A stretch of DNA of 64,000 nt, from the NCBI GenBank assembly GCA_004764695.1, contig SMSO01000031.1, positions 9,712,037-9,776,036 on the forward strand, read 5' to 3'. Below, in pieces: positions 18,605 to 26,840 of this stretch. The position numbers and the translations under genes were made by a program. The first letter of the stretch is position 1. Each line of letters opens with the position of its first letter. The stretch comes from Schizochytrium sp. TIO01 (Eukaryota; Protista; Bigyra: Labyrinthulomycetes). The notes below the pieces were generated by a model, which ran no database searches, was not told the origin of the DNA, and saw nothing but the letters and a program-made list of their open reading frames with translations.

Positions 18605-21600
18605 ATGTCAGACCACCCAGATGTTGTCGATGCCCTTGAGCAGCTTCGGAATGGCGCTACAACATTGTAGTAGGTTAACATGGTCCTCTCGGTCGCTCGG
18701 TCGCTCGGTCGTTTGCTTGCTTGCTTGCTTGCTTGCTTGCTTGCTTGCTTGCTTGCTTGCTTGCTTGCTTGCTTGCTTGCTTGCTTGCTTGCTTGCTTGC
18801 TTGCTTGCTGCTTGCTTGCTTGCTTGCTTGCTTGCTTGCTTGCTTGCTTGCTTGCTTGCTTGCTTGCTTGCTTGCTTGCTTGCTTGCTTGCTTGCTTGCT
18901 TGCTTGCTTGCTTGCTTGCTTGCTTGCTTGCTTGCTTGCTTGCTTGCTTGCTTGCTTGCTTGCTTGCTTGCTTGCTTGCTTGCTTGCTTGCTTGCTTGCT
19001 TGCTTGCTTGCTTGCTTGCTTGCTTGCTTGCTTGCTTGCTTGCTTGCTTGCTTGCTTGCTTGCTTGCTTGCTTGCTTGCTTGCTTGCTTGCTTGCTTGCT
19101 TGCTTGCTTGCTTGCTTGCTTGCTTGCTTGCTTGCTTGCTTGCTTGCTTGCTTGCTTGCTTGCTTGCTTGCTTGCTTGCTTGCTTGCTTGCTTGCTTGCT
19201 TGCTTGCTTGCTTGCTTGCTTGCTTGCTTGCTTGCTTGCTTGCTTGCTTGCTTGCTTGCTTGCTTGCTTGCTTGCTTGCTTGCTTGCTTGCTTGCTTGCT
19301 TGCTTGCTTTGCACGGTGTTGCTTTTGTTGTTATTGTTTTGCAAGTTTATGCAATGGCTGGTTTGTTTGTTTGTTTGTTGGATGGGTGGATGGATGACTG
19401 GATAAGTTGTCTGTTTGAGTGAGTATACATCCATCGAACAAAGAGCAAAATGACAACACAACAAAGATAAATGCTGAAAGCCAACCTAGATCACTCACCT
19501 GCATGCATGCATGCGTGCATCTATTGTAATATGAAACGTGTAATGTATTGCTTGCCATCATTCAATCAAATCGGCAGTCTTTCCTACAACGATATCGGCG
19601 ACGAGGGCGCCAAGGCAGTGGCTGCGGCGCTGAAAGAGAACCGGTCGCTGACATCACTTGTGTAAGTTGTCTACGCAACACCGCAGCTCGTGGACTTGTT
19701 TGTACATGATGCTTAGTTTGTTGTTTGGTGGGTGGGTCGGTGTTGTTTTGCAAGTTTATGCAATGGCTTGTTTGTTTGATGGATGGACACATTGTCTGTT
19801 TGAGTGAGTATACATTTATCGAACAAAGATAAATGGTGAAAGCCAACCTAGATCACTCACGTTCATGCATGCATGCGTGCATCTATTGTAATATGTAACG
19901 TGTAATGTATTGCTTGCCATCATTCAATCAAATCGACAGTCTTGAAAGCAACGAGATCGGCGACGAGGGCGCCAAGGCAGTGGCTGCGGCGCTGAAAGAG
20001 AACCGGTCGCTGACATCACTATCGTAAGTTGTCTACGCAACACCGCAGCTCGTGGACTTGTTTGTACATGATGCTTGGTTTGTTGTTTGGTGGGTGGGTC
20101 GGTGTTGTTTTGCAAGTTTATGCAATCGCTTGTTTGTTTGATGGATGGATGAGTTGTCTGTTTGAGTGAGTCCACATCCATCGAACAAAGAGCAAAATGA
20201 CAACACAACAAAGATAAATGCTGAAAGCCAAGCTAGATCACTCACGTCCATGCATGTATGCGTGCATCTATTGTAATATGTAACGTGTAATGTATTGCTT
20301 GCCATCATTCAATTAAATCGACAGTCTTGAAAGCAACGAGATCGGCTCAGAGGGCGGCGAGGCAGTGGGTGCGGCGCTGAAAGAGAACCGGTCGCTGGCA
20401 TCACTTGTGTAAGTTGTCTACGCAACACCGCAGCTCGTGGACTTGTTTGTACATGATGCTTGGTTTATTGTTTGGTGGGTGGGTCCGTGTTGTTTTGCAA
20501 GTTTATGCAATCGCTTGTTTGTTTGATGGATGGATGGGTTGTCTGTTTGAGTGAGGATACATCCATCGAACAAAGAGCAAAATGACAACACAACACAACA
20601 AAGATAAATGCTGAAAGCCAAGCTAGATCACTCACGTCCATGCATGCATGCGTGCATATATTGTAATATGTAATGTGTAATGTATTGCTTGCCATCATTC
20701 AATCAAATCGACAGTCTTGAACGCAACGATATCGGCTCAGAGGGCGGCAAGGCAGTGGCTGCGGCGCTGAAAGAGAACCGGTCGCTGACATCACTCAAGT
20801 AAGTTGTCTACGCAACACCGCAGCTCGTGGACTTGTTTGTACATGATGCTTGGTTTATTGTTTGGTGGGTGGGTCCGTGTTGTTTTGCAAGTTTATGCAA
20901 TCGCTTGTTTGTTTGATGGATGGATGGGTTGTCTGTTTGGGTGAGTATATATCCATCGAACAAAGAGCAAAATGGCAACACAACAAGAATAAATGCTGAA
21001 AGCCAACCTAGATCACTCACGTCCATGCATGGATGCGCGCATCAATTGTAATATGTAACGTGTAATGTATTGCTTGCCATCATTCAATCAAATCGACAGT
21101 CTTGATAACAACGATATCGGCTCAGAGGGCGCCAAGGCAGTGGCTGCGGGGCTGAAAGAGAACCGGTCGCTGACATCACTTGAGTAAGTTGTCTTAGCAA
21201 CACCGCAGCTCGTGGACTTGTTTGTACATGATGCTTGGTTTGTTGTTTGGTGGGTGGATCAGTGTTGTTTTGCAAGTTTATGCAATCGCCTGTTTGTTTG
21301 AGTGAGTATACATTCATCGAACAAAGAGCAAAATGACAACACAACAAAGATAAATGCTGAAAGCCAACCTAGATCACTCACGTCCATGCATGCATGCGTG
21401 CGTGCATCTATTGTAATATGTAACGTCTAATGTATTGCTTGCCATCATTCAATCAAATCGACAGTCTTGGATACAACCAAATCGGCTCAGAGGGCGCCAA
21501 GGCAGTGGCTGCGGCGCTGAAAGAGAACCGGTCGCTGACATCACTTGAGTAAGTTGTCTACGCAACACCGCAGCTCGTGGACTTGTTTGTACATGATGGT

Positions 21601-24600: not shown

Positions 24601-26840
24601 GAATCGGCTCAGACGGCGCCAAGGCAGTGGGTGCGGCGCTGAAAGAGAACCTGTCGCTGACATCACTTGAGTAAGTTGTCTACGCAATACCGCAGCTCGT
24701 GGACTTGTTTGTACATGATGCTTGGTTAGTTGTTTGGTGGGTGGGTCGGTGTTGTTTTGCAAGTTTATGCAATCGCTTGTTTGTTTGATGGATGGATGAG
24801 TTGTCTGTTTGAGTGAGTATACATCCATCGAACAAAGAGCAAAATGACAACACAACAAAGATAAATGCTTAAAGCTAACCTAGATCACTCACGTCCATGC
24901 ATGCATGCGTGCATCTATTGTAATATGTAACGTGTAATGTATTGCTTGCCATTATTCAATCCAATCGACAGTCTTTATGGCAACAAAATCGGCAACGAGG
25001 GCGCCAAGGCAGTTGCTGCGGCGCTGAAAGAGAACCGATCGCTGACATCACTTGAGTAAGTTGTCTACGCAACACCGCAGCTCGTGGACTTATTTGTACA
25101 TGATGCTTGGTTTGTTGTTTGGTGGGTGGGTCGGTGTTGTTTTGCAAGTTTATGCAATCTCTTGTTTGTTTGATGGATGGATGAGTTGTCTGTTTGAGTG
25201 AGTATACATTCATCGAACAAAGTGCAAAATGGCAACACAACAAAGATAAATGCTGAAAGCCAACCTAGATCACTCACGTCCATGCATGGATGCGTGCATC
25301 TATTGTAATATGTAACGTGTAATGTATTGCTTGCCATCATTCAATCAAATCGACAGTCTTCCTGACAACCAGATCGGCTCAGAGGGCGCCAAGGCAGTGG
25401 CTGCGGCGCTAAAAGAGAATCGGTCGCTAACATCACTATCGTAAGTTGTCTACGCAACACCGCAGCTCGTGGACTTGTTTGTACATGATGCTTGGTTTGT
25501 TGTTTGGTGGGTGGGTCGGTGTTGTTTTGCAAGTTTATGCAATCGCTTGTTTGTTTGATGGATGGATGAGTTGTCTGTTTGAGTGAGTACACATCCATCG
25601 AACAAAGAGCAAAATGACAACACAACAAAGATAAATGCTTAAAGCCAACCTAGATCACTCACGTCCATGCATGGATGCGTGCATCTATTGTAATATGTAA
25701 CGTGTAATGTATTGCTTGCCATCATTCAATCATATCAACAGTCTTAGTAACAACAATATCGGCTCAGAGGGCGCCAATGCAGTGGCTGCGGCGCTGAAAG
25801 TGAACCGGTCGCTGACATCACTTGTGTAAGTTGTCTACGCAACACCGCAGCTCGTGGACTTGTTTGTACATGATGGTTGGTTTGTTGTTTGGTGGGTGGG
25901 TCGGTGTTGTTTTGCAAGTTTATGCAATCGCTTGTTTGTTTGATGGATGGATGAGTTGTCTGTTTGAGTGAGTTTACATCCATCGAACAAAGAGCAAAAT
26001 GACAACACAACAAAGATAAATGCTGAAAGCTAACCTAGATCACTCACGTCCATGCATCCATGCGTGCATCTATTGCATCTATTGTAATATGTAACGTGTA
26101 ATGTATTGGTTGCCATCATTCAATCCAATCGACAGTCTTAGAAGCAACAATATCGGCGACGAGGGCGCCAAGGCACTGGCTGCGGCGCTGAAAGTGAACT
26201 GGTCGCTGACATCACTTGAGTAAGTTGTTTAAGCAATAGCTCGTGTACTGGTTTGTACATTAGACTTGGTTGGTTGGTCGCGTCGTGGGTTGTCTACTGT
26301 GTTGTTTTGCCGATGTTTTTCTTCGCGTCATTGCAAGTTTGTTGCGGAATTGTTTGTTTGGTTGATTGTGGATGTAACAAAGAAGATGATAATATCAGAG
26401 AATAAATGAAACTGTACTGGCAATACTGTGGGTGCCTTTTGATGATGTGAAATTGTTAACTGACGAACGGAGTTGATGTCATTTGGTTTTTACTGATCCT
26501 TAGAATGTCCGATGAGTTGACGGATGAAATGCACAAGGAGCGCCAGTTGAATAGAAAAATTTATTCTGCAAAGGCAAGAAGGAAAATGCTTGAACAGATA
26601 TCTCGTGAGCTTCGTTGTATACATGTTGTGAACGATGCACTTTCTCTGCCGTTTTCAGTGAAGCGTAGTCTTCTTACACAAACCTGGCCTGTTAACAGCT
26701 CGAGTGAGCTGAGTTCGAAAGAGGATTATCTTTCTGCGCAGAAAGTAGAGCTTGATGGGCTGGAAGCTGCAAACGTTGCCTTTCGTGGAGCATTGGGATG
26801 TCTAGGCCCTTATATTTTGAATAAAAATAGTTCTAAATAG
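18605..26840 (+). CDS. Variable-LRR gene A: N-cap + 18 RI-like (NLRC3-like) 28-aa LRR exons + unique C-terminal domain; ~637 aa, 20 exons
   Basis: Exon 1 is 18605-18669 (MSDHPDVVDALEQLRNGATTL, donor GTAGGT). 84-nt exons start at 19578, 19940, 20325, 20715, 21100, 21465, 21849, 22234, 22628, 23022, 23432, 23817, 24202, 24587, 24972, 25357, 25742 and 26136, each bounded by CAG and GTAAGT (one GTATGT). Consensus xLxxNxIGxEGAKAVAAALKENRSLTSL. The last exon 26504-26840 follows ACTGATCCTTAG and is in frame. All introns are phase 2 and there are no stops. Confidence 0.88.
18714..19309. repeat. (GCTT)n microsatellite, ~149 units, in intron 1 of LRR gene A
   Basis: Read directly; one interruption near 18809. 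Confidence 0.97.
19330..26260 (+). repeat. Tandem array of ~385-bp units x18 (intron + LRR exon)
   Basis: Exon starts are spaced about 362-410 bp apart, and intron sequence is near-identical between units. Confidence 0.97.

Follow-up and report, generated by a model that had tools for sequence, protein, structure and literature searches.

The window, the whole 64,000-nt stretch of Schizochytrium sp. TIO01 DNA analysed here, contains a gene (gene A) built from near-identical LRR exons, and an initial annotation claimed that its hypervariability is concentrated in the codons straddling each splice junction. The locus thus raises the question of what diversifies these codons while the rest of the unit is homogenised; strong diversifying selection or a targeted mutation or conversion mechanism had been proposed.

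Organization of gene A and neighbouring arrays

The features of the window are summarized in Table 1. Gene A is present in the assembly as a complete open gene with a start, 18 LRR exons, a tail and a stop. A signal peptide is not evident in exon 1, whose trailing bases form a Tyr codon with the initial T of the exon that follows. The introns of array A are ~300 nt long, of GT..AG type and in phase 2, and each of the 18 exons is preceded by AG and followed by GTAAGT. The first base of every exon is T, which completes the codon begun by the last two bases of the preceding exon. With phase-2 introns and a T at the start of all exons, every junction codon takes the form NNT, and the exons are in frame and stop-free in any order. 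One 84-nt exon corresponds to one 28-residue RI-type LRR. Its 5' patch consists of the invariant T, CTT (Leu), x3 (nt5-7), x4 (nt8-10), AAC (Asn) and x6 (nt14-16), while at nt82-84 the last Leu codon ends with its third base and the split codon x1 begins with its first two. All 18 x-L-x-x-N-x motifs originally read from gene A (YLSYND ... VLRSNN) were reproduced from the exon coordinates.

Table 1. Features of the 64,000-nt window (position 1 is its first letter)
Feature	Position	Strand	Description
5S rRNA gene	18031-18149	-	just upstream of gene A
Gene A, exon 1	18605-18669	+	ATG, 21 codons, 2 trailing bases (TA)
(TTGC)149 microsatellite	18713-19309	+	within intron 1 of gene A
Array A	19578-26219	+	18 LRR exons of 84 nt and 17 introns of 278-326 nt; 385-bp period
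Array A, starts of exons 1-9	19578, 19940, 20325, 20715, 21100, 21465, 21849, 22234, 22628	+	each end = start + 83 nt
Array A, starts of exons 10-18	23022, 23432, 23817, 24202, 24587, 24972, 25357, 25742, 26136	+	each end = start + 83 nt
5' variable patch (example)	19578-19593	+	exon nt1-16; layout common to all 18 exons
3' variable patch (example)	19659-19661	+	exon nt82-84; layout common to all 18 exons
Gene A, last exon	26504-26840	+	112-residue helical tail, then stop codon
18S-5.8S-28S rRNA genes	30527-36050	+	downstream of gene A
Open frame with protein kinase domain	44498-47266	-	922 residues; downstream of array B
Array B	47569-52327	-	at least 9 LRR exons of 84 nt; 427-bp period
Second 5S rRNA copy	54237-54355		upstream of gene C
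Gene C	54805-59993	+	paralogue of gene A: exon 1, (GCTT)73 intron, 11 LRR exons, tail exon
Gene C, LRR exons	55390-59390	+	11 exons of 84 nt
Gene C, tail exon	59675-59993	+
Further 18S rRNA gene	from 63773		downstream of gene C

Arrays A and C together comprise 29 exons of 84 nt, all in phase 2/2, and array B has the same exon layout and variable positions as array A. TRF detected the 385-bp period in two arrays of the window (16.6 and 10.7 copies), with units that are 91% alike. About 1,000 cassettes are present genome-wide, mostly beside subtelomeric rRNA genes, of which ~20% were sampled in our analyses; units from different contigs are 93-97% alike. In addition, contig C6 begins with a TTAGG-type telomere repeat. 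The tail of gene A belongs to no Pfam family, and the tail domain is kept at 37-42% identity in relatives that bear ordinary, diverged LRRs.

LRR class and predicted structure

The consensus of the 28-residue exons is L-x-L-x-x-N-x-I-G-(S/D)-E-G-A-K-A-V-(A/G)-A-A-L-K-E-N-R-S-L-T-S, and the array exons show the length and pattern that define RI-type LRRs (28-29 residues, LxxLxLxxNxIGdeGaxxLaxaLxxN). Single exons scored 15-23.4 bits against Pfam LRR_6, one of them reaching the cut-off of 23.4. When searched against the PDB with phmmer, single exons matched an RI-like protein (2e-5), a designed RI-type LRR (3e-5), NOD2 (1e-3) and ribonuclease inhibitor 1dfj (4.5e-3), as well as LRRC34. In the AlphaFold model of a natural relative, P0010 (mean pLDDT 77.5), strands of 5 residues and helices of 13 residues recur every 28 residues. 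In this model S-L-x1-L-x3 is predicted to form the strand and x4/N/x6 the ascending loop, with p9 as the putative helix N-cap. The modelled geometry agrees with the proposal that the variable positions make up the ligand face of the LRRs. Judged from its sequence, gene A is best explained as encoding a ~640-residue, probably cytosolic protein with a short N-terminus, 18 RI-type LRRs and a helical tail of ~110 residues.

The arrays are spliced and intact

Contigs of runs X1 and X5, presumed to be RNA, join 26219 to 26504 at GT..AG. The same contigs contain helix-patch-helix segments joined without introns, many with patches foreign to the window. In the MMETSP transcript ORF P0006 the last LRR exon is likewise fused to the tail. 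An automated integrity test, which required the absence of stops and frameshifts and the retention of AG and GT, was passed by 205 of 209 sampled copies; of the remaining four, three are intact and were flagged for BLAST gaps only, and the fourth, an exon of array B, has another register. Frame, AG and GT are thus kept in 208 of the 209 detected copies. That none of the many codon changes is a stop, as first noticed in gene A, extends to the 205 copies scored intact, against ~39 stops expected at x3, x4 and x6 if codon positions were independent. Broken or reverse-oriented exons were absent among the 209 sampled copies. In the scaffold, pN was 0.038 and pS 0.10, with an omega of 0.50.

Diversity is concentrated at the splice junctions

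Within array A, nucleotide diversity (pi) was 0.505 at the variable codon sites, 0.077 elsewhere in the exon and 0.046 in the introns, where one of 301 columns exceeds 0.5; the concentration at junction-straddling codons is thus borne out. The same pattern was found in 171 distinct units from ~22 loci. In a genome-wide profile over 140 units with ungapped flanks, diversity was 0.54-0.74 at nt5-9, 0.71 at nt14, 0.60 at nt16 and 0.47-0.66 at nt82-84, with dimorphic sites at nt23-25 (~0.48) and nt45 (0.46). All remaining exon and intron sites were at or below 0.27, mostly below 0.1, which confirms the reported near-uniformity of helix codons and introns. The variable codons are ~10 times as diverse as the introns, the per-site comparison that had been suggested as a check.

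The whole-codon replacements described earlier are real. At p9, TCA and GAC occur without intermediates, p16 is either GCT or GGT, and at nt82-84 (TGA, CAA and ATC among others) there are five major alleles, 2-3 bases apart and with the silent base linked; G was never found at nt82 in the 171 units. In the same units, x3, x4 and x6 hold 37, 23 and 19 distinct codons, respectively, and 125 distinct 12-nt patches were counted, with up to five different x6 codons on one x3-x4 background. The other codons in the patch hardly vary, even at their third bases (Leu CTT in 164 of 171 units, Asn AAC in 163 of 171). Third bases are also restricted within the variable codons: x4 is NNC in ~145 of 171 units, with NNT absent, and pyrimidine-ending x6 codons use T (GAT 43 vs GAC 0, AAT 29 vs AAC 0, TAT 15 vs TAC 0).

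Probable selection and observed gene conversion

The probability of a different codon given the same amino acid was 0.10 at x4, 0.10 at x6 and 0.00 at p9, compared with 0-0.12 in the scaffold. At nt4, nt13, nt10 (C/T) and nt16 (T/C), silent sites scattered among the variable bases, diversity is at background level, which makes a regional mutator unlikely. Polymorphism reaches about 70% of the sites in introns and scaffold, with minor alleles near 2%, and variable sites carry about four alleles (mean 3.9) near 50%. Ordinary mutation supply thus suffices, and what differs is retention. The one-step ratio of non-synonymous to synonymous changes, which is robust to recombination, was 9.7 at x4 and 3.9 at x6. 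For these two codons the expectation of a raised dN/dS held; for x3 alone the excess was not significant (ratio 1.3, omega 1.8). Fitted to the tree of units, a GY codon model gave an omega of 4.9-5.4 (2 delta lnL of 49-55 vs omega = 1), but shuffling of the tips lifted omega to 11-41, so that wrong topology or recombination inflates tree-based omega and its magnitude is untrustworthy. Raised synonymous diversity was observed in two places, at nt82 (0.65) and among Ser codons of the TCN type at x3, and is not predicted by pure selection on amino acids.

Patch divergence is saturated (0.55 per site) in units whose 269 nt of flanks differ by 1.7%, and in some unit pairs the flanks are identical (0/269) while 4/9 and 3/3 patch bases differ. 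Differences between syntenic arrays on different contigs are clustered, with clean swaps among the common nt82-84 alleles. Short-tract gene conversion is thus seen directly; it homogenises scaffold and introns and moves patches between units. In arrays 99.1-99.7% identical, no point changes were found in 216 bases of x3, x4 and x6, where ~16 would be expected at 25 times the flank rate.

We consider it probable that diversifying selection on amino acids, together with frequent short-tract conversion, explains these hypervariable one-LRR-per-exon arrays. Conversion and unequal exchange among near-identical units, within and between chromosome ends, would hold introns and helix/scaffold codons at ~95% identity and shift patches from unit to unit. 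Selection would retain and spread changes at four positions, x1 and x3 of the beta strand and x4 and x6 of the ascending loop, and act more weakly at p9 and p16. The outcome would be a constant solenoid with a different putative recognition surface on each repeat, which may bind ligands and could have an immune-like or non-self recognition role.

Alternative explanations

The 385-bp arrays are the same DNA element as the published Group 0 LORE-TEARS of Aurantiochytrium limacinum, which comprise ~9 tandem units of ~385 bp, located between the 5S and 18S genes of chromosome ends that bear TTAGG telomeres (bioRxiv 10.1101/2023.06.15.545109). Unit sizes match those of Groups 0 and 5 (~385 bp and ~421 bp), as do copy numbers, the 5S-18S position and the telomeres. 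The preprint treats the units as non-coding spacers without database similarity, possibly involved in chromosome-end maintenance (bioRxiv 10.1101/2023.06.15.545109), and on such an account, which the 5S-18S position fits, the open frame and the resemblance to LRRs would have arisen by chance, and the variable positions would be free of constraint. However, the arrays described here are spliced LRR exons with hypervariable codons. Such a non-coding satellite is contradicted by the kept frame and splice sites, the spliced junctions in the transcript-like contigs and the MMETSP ORF, the Pfam and PDB matches of single exons and the conservation of the tail domain. Unconstrained sites would moreover show the diversity of introns (0.05) instead of 0.6-0.7, and we regard this reading as scarcely tenable. 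A published 385-bp "spacer repeat" beside rRNA genes is thereby recast as a spliced LRR gene.

Of the two mechanisms first proposed, selection is supported by background silent sites and by the ratios at x4 and x6, and targeted mutation is disfavoured. A programmed process, germline or somatic, could write bases into the junction-flanking patches through site-directed mutation or through micro-conversion templated by the pool of cassettes, so that the cell actively generates receptor diversity. This would fit the units that differ at half of their patch bases on identical flanks, the clean 3-nt block replacements at nt82-84 in recent duplicates and the covariation of silent nt82, never G, with the split codon. 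The fixed third bases (x1 NNT, x4 NNC) prevent stops, as in a randomisation scheme, and the subtelomeric rDNA setting is recombination-prone (bioRxiv 10.1101/2023.06.15.545109). Yet with silent positions at background 1-3 nt away, a mutator would need single-base, codon-tracking precision, and the two halves of the patch are ~300 nt apart in the DNA and contiguous only in mRNA and protein. The block swaps trade alleles that are already common (TGA, ATC), for which an ordinary tract ending in identical scaffold suffices. Adenine-directed mutagenesis, as by a diversity-generating retroelement, is excluded by the invariant Asn AAC within the patch, and all four bases are present at variable sites. 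Together with the lack of point changes in the 216 patch bases, this makes a programmed process improbable. It is also rather unlikely that the variation is merely old, with ancestral repeats that already differed, conversion homogenising the rest and purifying or balancing selection preserving ancestral residues with no ongoing positive selection. Some allele sets do look old and are few (the five linked alleles at nt82-84, p9 and p16), and x3, x4 and x6 are unchanged in recent duplicates. The large numbers of codons and patches argue against it, as do the several x6 codons on single x3-x4 backgrounds and the ordinary LRRs of relatives sharing the tail. Allele classes mostly keep one ancestral third base (x4 NNC; T in pyrimidine-ending x6 and x3), and these kept bases and the embedded silent sites indicate that the alleles are no older than the ~5% silent divergence of the family.

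Comparison with known systems

In plant R-gene and PGIP LRRs, lamprey VLRs and the repeat-variable diresidues of TAL effectors, hypervariable exposed positions on a constant scaffold set specificity. Plant LRR repeats are, however, not kept near-identical as the units here are, and TALE repeats, which are not LRRs, bind DNA.

The closest precedents are exon shuffling in Ectocarpus ROCO genes and the fungal high-internal-conservation (HIC) NLR repeats. Ectocarpus genes of the ROCO and of the NB-ARC-TPR type are, like gene A, a stramenopile family with a separate exon, 3n in length, for each repeat, and in brown-algal ROCOs exon shuffling drives domain variability, with positively selected residues on the concave LRR face (PMC3341825; PMC11378527). 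The exon is 72 nt (24 residues) in the Ectocarpus type and 84 nt here, and, unlike in the former, the introns here are ~95% identical across chromosomes, so that the array looks like a satellite of 385 bp. Gene A also lacks a ROC-COR or NB-ARC domain (array B adjoins the protein kinase frame), the inactivated or reversed exon copies of the Ectocarpus type are missing (0/209), and the cassettes occupy the spacer between 5S and 18S in the subtelomeric rDNA units. The HIC WD, ANK and TPR repeats of fungi (Podospora het-d/het-e/nwd) resemble gene A in being near-identical and concerted within and between genes, in varying in repeat number and in showing diversifying selection at a few binding-face codons (PMC4986451, PMC12222747). 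The repeat identity (91% by TRF, 93-97% between contigs) and conversion tracts of the present family correspond to what defines HIC repeats, i.e. more than 85% identity and concerted evolution. Fungal NLRs bear no LRRs (PMC4986451), and their repeats, which do not each have an exon of their own, are attached to a NOD domain. No NOD (NACHT or NB-ARC) domain was found within 18605-26840, the NACHT matches of the genome lying elsewhere.

VLR assembly and chicken Ig gene conversion actively generate receptor diversity. In lampreys, somatic assembly adds VLR cassettes to a germline gene that is incomplete; gene A differs in being complete in the germline assembly. That the ~1,000 cassettes are an active generator, giving clonal lineages or single cells different LRR surfaces, seems quite doubtful to us. 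Such a generator would act through mitotic conversion or unequal exchange between chromosome ends, possibly with in-frame skipping of exons, all of which are in phase 2/2. If true, it would be a protist analogue of the VLR or Ig-conversion repertoires, perhaps aimed at resident mirusviruses.

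Array and gene anatomy

Tandem Repeats Finder was run on the window, which holds two arrays with a 385-bp period, one at 19822-26236 (array A, 16.6 copies, 91% matches) and one at 55238-59399, as well as a 427-bp array at 47604-52738. Exons were called by reading the sequence and by scanning for AG, 84 nt and GTAAGT with an open frame. Array A contains 18 leucine-rich repeat (LRR) exons and array C 11, every one exactly 84 nt long (nt1-84). All are in phase 2, the initial T of each exon completing a codon whose first two bases close the preceding exon, and the product after the T codon is L-x-x-N-x-I-G-(S/D)-E-G-A-K-A-V-(A/G)-A-A-L-K-E-N-R-S-L-T-S-L. 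From the exon coordinates and exon 1 we reproduced exactly all 18 six-residue x-L-x-x-N-x motifs listed in the initial annotation. LRR positions 2-3 are also variable in the array B family (Q-I, Q-K, Q-T, T-H).

Features of the LRR genes and the neighbouring RNA genes in the window
Feature	Position	Strand	Remarks
5S	18031-18149	-	Rfam
Gene A exon 1	18605-18669	+	ATG start, ends TA
(TTGC)149	18713-19309		very long pure tetranucleotide microsatellite; intron 1 of gene A, between 65-nt exon 1 and first LRR exon
Gene A tail exon	26504-26840	+	112-residue tail and stop, after last LRR exon
18S-5.8S-28S	30527-36050		Rfam
Four tRNA genes	36863-40020		just downstream of 28S
Array B and kinase frame	44498-52327	-	84-nt LRR exons upstream of 922-residue frame with protein kinase domain
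Second 5S	54237-54355		Rfam
Gene C	54805-59993		paralogue of gene A, identical plan
(GCTT)73	54882-55175		very long pure tetranucleotide microsatellite; intron 1 of gene C, between 65-nt exon 1 and first LRR exon
Second 18S	from 63773 onward		Rfam

Evidence for a spliced coding gene

The 385-bp arrays are a spliced gene and not a satellite. In contigs of sequencing runs X1 and X5, tentatively classed as RNA, position 26219 is joined to 26504 (GT..AG), and many contigs of these runs pass from helix through patch (the variable bases) to helix with no intron, bearing patches absent from the window. No such spliced joints were found in the contigs of run X19. Independently of X1 and X5, in the MMETSP transcript ORF P0006 the tail follows directly on the final part of a last LRR exon. 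The tail domain is 37-42% identical in the database proteins P0002 and P0010, which carry ordinary diverged LRRs of the ribonuclease inhibitor (RI) type, and single exons, queried one at a time, matched Pfam LRR_6 as well as solved ribonuclease inhibitor, NOD2, LRRC34 and designed RI-type LRRs. None of 209 copies sampled from ~22 loci had a stop, frameshift or lost splice site; the flags raised on four copies trace to artefacts of alignment gaps or to an array-B exon read in a different register.

Multi-kb exon-exon "skips" in the contigs are indistinguishable from ambiguous placement of identical scaffold (the exon outside the variable positions), and no skipping is claimed. A strain-to-strain comparison through the run contigs was uninformative, as these contigs fit many units. 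The public MMETSP ORFs P0001 and P0006 hold either the tail by itself or the tail and a single LRR, with translated intron sequence upstream of the LRR. Repeated exons evidently collapse in short-read assemblies, and the gene may thus have gone unnoticed.

Distribution of diversity and structural setting

Within array A, variable codon sites had a pi of 0.505, against 0.077 for the remaining exon bases and 0.046 for introns. Among 140 units with ungapped flanks from the whole genome, pi was 0.54-0.74 at nt5-9, 0.71 at nt14, 0.60 at nt16, 0.47-0.66 at nt82-84, ~0.48 at nt23-25 and 0.46 at nt45, and at most 0.27 at every other exon or intron site. The two parts of the patch, nt82-84 and nt1-16 of the next exon, are contiguous in the mRNA and ~300 nt apart in the DNA, and the patch thus straddles the splice junction. 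Such a placement of the hypervariable codons at each junction had been noted initially, and it is confirmed, far beyond chance, in both array A and the genome-wide units.

The protein P0010, a natural relative, was used as structural proxy for the gene A product. In its AlphaFold model (mean pLDDT 77.5), the repeat has a 5-residue strand equivalent to S27-L28-x1-L2-x3, followed by a loop with x4, Asn and x6 and a helix starting at p9, and the tail consists of long helices. The variable positions x1 and x3 alternate with core leucines and thus face the concave side, while x4, x6 and p9 are predicted to line the ascending rim, which is a contact surface in ribonuclease inhibitor complexes. The model is consistent with the exposed strand and loop location that the initial annotation gave to the variable positions. 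The residues found there (S, R, E, Q, G, Y, N, D, K, W) are typical of binding surfaces.

Probable selection, conversion and a possible mutator

Of 171 units, 164 have CTT for the Leu inside the patch and 163 have AAC for the Asn. In ~145 of these units x4 is NNC, with an NNT count of zero, and pyrimidine-ending codons at x6 end in T (GAT 43 vs GAC 0, AAT 29 vs AAC 0, TAT 15 vs TAC 0). The probability that two units use different codons for the same residue was 0.10 at x4, 0.10 at x6 and 0.00 at p9, with 0-0.12 for scaffold codons; silent sites lying among the variable bases do not rise above background diversity. These silent sites lie only 1-3 nt from saturated ones, so that recombination cannot separate the two; the excess of replacements over silent changes is one within codons. 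One-step codon pairs gave N/S per site of 9.7 at x4, 3.9 at x6 and 1.3 at x3. Pairwise NG86 at the variable codons (pN 0.56 vs pS 0.33) is distorted because saturated codons involve multi-step paths, and was set aside for one-step pairs and within-amino-acid codon diversity.

In a set of 121 units, polymorphism affects ~70% of the sites in introns and scaffold, the minor alleles being close to 2%, and the variable sites carry ~four alleles (mean 3.9), at ~50%. Since most sites have already mutated, it is retention and not mutation supply that sets the variable sites apart. Fitting a GY codon model to the unit tree gave an omega of 4.9-5.4 for variable codons (2 delta lnL 49-55 vs omega = 1), while scaffold codons had 0.50; the tree of the variable codons was 21-27 times longer. 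Shuffling the tips raised omega to 11-41, showing that topology error from recombination inflates tree-based omega, which we thus take as supporting evidence only; the per-codon IQ-TREE runs, in which identical sequences were collapsed, give rough estimates.

The within-codon excess of replacements, the background level of silent sites and the retention of alleles all favour the initial reading of diversifying selection opposing homogenisation, which probably explains the pattern. A targeted generator of patch diversity is possible but improbable. The silent nt82 is odd in that its variability matches that of the split codon to which it is linked (T-GA, C-AA, A-TC, T-GT, A-TA; G never). Silent sites 3-6 nt from nt82 are not variable. 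The nt82 pattern would require no more than two old mutations carried along with successful x1 alleles, though a process acting on 3-nt blocks is possible. All four TCN codons are in use for Ser at x3; x1, p9 and p16 look like positions with few, older alleles, and x3, x4 and x6 look like recent ones with many alleles. Between syntenic arrays on different chromosome ends (99.1-99.7% identical), 216 bases of x3, x4 and x6 show no point change, where a rate 25 times that of the flanks should have produced ~16; this speaks against a mutator in continuous action. Of the alternative raised initially, targeted mutation is disfavoured, and conversion tracts are seen between syntenic arrays.

Diversifying selection would act on units that are homogenised around the patch. 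Patch divergence is saturated (0.55 per site) already at 1.7% divergence of the 269 nt of flanks and scaffold, and some unit pairs have 0/269 flank differences, yet differ at 4/9 and 3/3 patch bases. In a MAFFT distance matrix, array A is star-like with no positional gradient and with 18-37 pairwise differences between units, the closest pair being A08/A17 with 9. Differences between syntenic arrays are clustered, in one case with 8 changes in 225 nt across half an exon plus the following intron, in others with 4 changes in 95 nt or with nt59 changed together with nt82-84. Two clean nt82-84 swaps between common alleles were also observed, TGA to ATC and CGA to ATC. All of these are short conversion tracts. 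A tract from a donor identical to the recipient outside the patch leaves a visible change only in the patch, which explains the whole-codon replacements noted in the initial annotation.

Genomic setting and family size

The assembly comprises 64.07 Mb in 37 contigs, the window being the final 64 kb of a 9.78-Mb contig, and a TTAGG-type telomere is present at the start of contig C6. The order in the window (RNA genes from Rfam) is 5S, gene A, 18S-5.8S-28S, tRNAs, gene B, 5S, gene C and 18S. The start of the terminal 18S (63773-64000) is 91% identical to the internal copy (30527-30754) with 13 gaps, probably reflecting contig-end long-read noise or a decaying terminal copy. Three intron-free genes, for a tubulin-tyrosine ligase family protein, an alpha-kinase and an enoyl-CoA hydratase, are located at 926-4737 (minus strand) and 16088-16912. 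The genome is intron-poor except for the LRR arrays, with ~one intron per 28 residues. The plastid gene psbA is absent, a result applied solely to the organism's placement.

Matches to the 385-bp unit, at least 389 with 93-100% identity, are spread over many contigs, and a large number fall within ~50 kb of a contig end. A search for a 32-nt helix core, allowing up to 3 mismatches, gave 1,010 occurrences genome-wide (reversed control 0). Units were sampled from 36 loci, ~20% of the family. Some arrays are identical or 99.7% identical across contigs (C13:110525-115055 vs C27:674-5204), and C27, 19.9 kb long, may repeat the beginning of C13 through duplication in the assembly. C30:5480840-5484224 is identical or 99.7% identical to C30:5516162-5519546 and to C5:1795419-1798803, the C30 pair being inverted and 35 kb apart.

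Relation to known systems

Aurantiochytrium limacinum MYA-1381 has TTAGG telomeres, universal subtelomeric rDNAs and LORE-TEARS, of which "Group 0" consists of ~9 units of ~385 bp between 5S and 18S and "Group 5" has units of ~421 bp; no similarity to GenBank sequences was found for them, and a possible role in chromosome-end maintenance was suggested (bioRxiv 10.1101/2023.06.15.545109). The present arrays and their setting match those of A. limacinum MYA-1381 in the TTAGG telomere, the 5S/18S position and the 385-bp units, and the identification is based on these shared features. In our literature search, this preprint alone used the term LORE-TEARS, and no paper tied Aurantiochytrium rDNA spacers to LRRs. 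The two nearest known systems are brown-algal ROCO genes and the repeats of fungal NLRs. Fungal NLRs with high-internal-conservation repeats combine concerted evolution with positive selection at interface codons, and have no LRRs (PMC4986451). In contrast to these and to brown-algal ROCO repeats, the repeat described here is of the RI type with 28 residues, combines one exon per repeat with near-identical introns, and is found in ~1,000 cassettes inside subtelomeric rDNA units; gene A is without a NOD or ROC domain.

A published class of "non-coding spacer", present at almost all chromosome ends of a model marine protist, would become a family of ~1,000 coding cassettes, and tandem-repeat annotation may conceal spliced genes. 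After brown-algal ROCO and fungal NLR repeats, this would be a third independent case in which hypervariable surface codons under selection sit on a constant repeat scaffold, here in a tractable unicellular system that is culturable, transformable and has a persistent virus. It opens the questions of how concerted evolution and diversifying selection are partitioned at the scale of single codons, and of repertoire-type recognition in protists.
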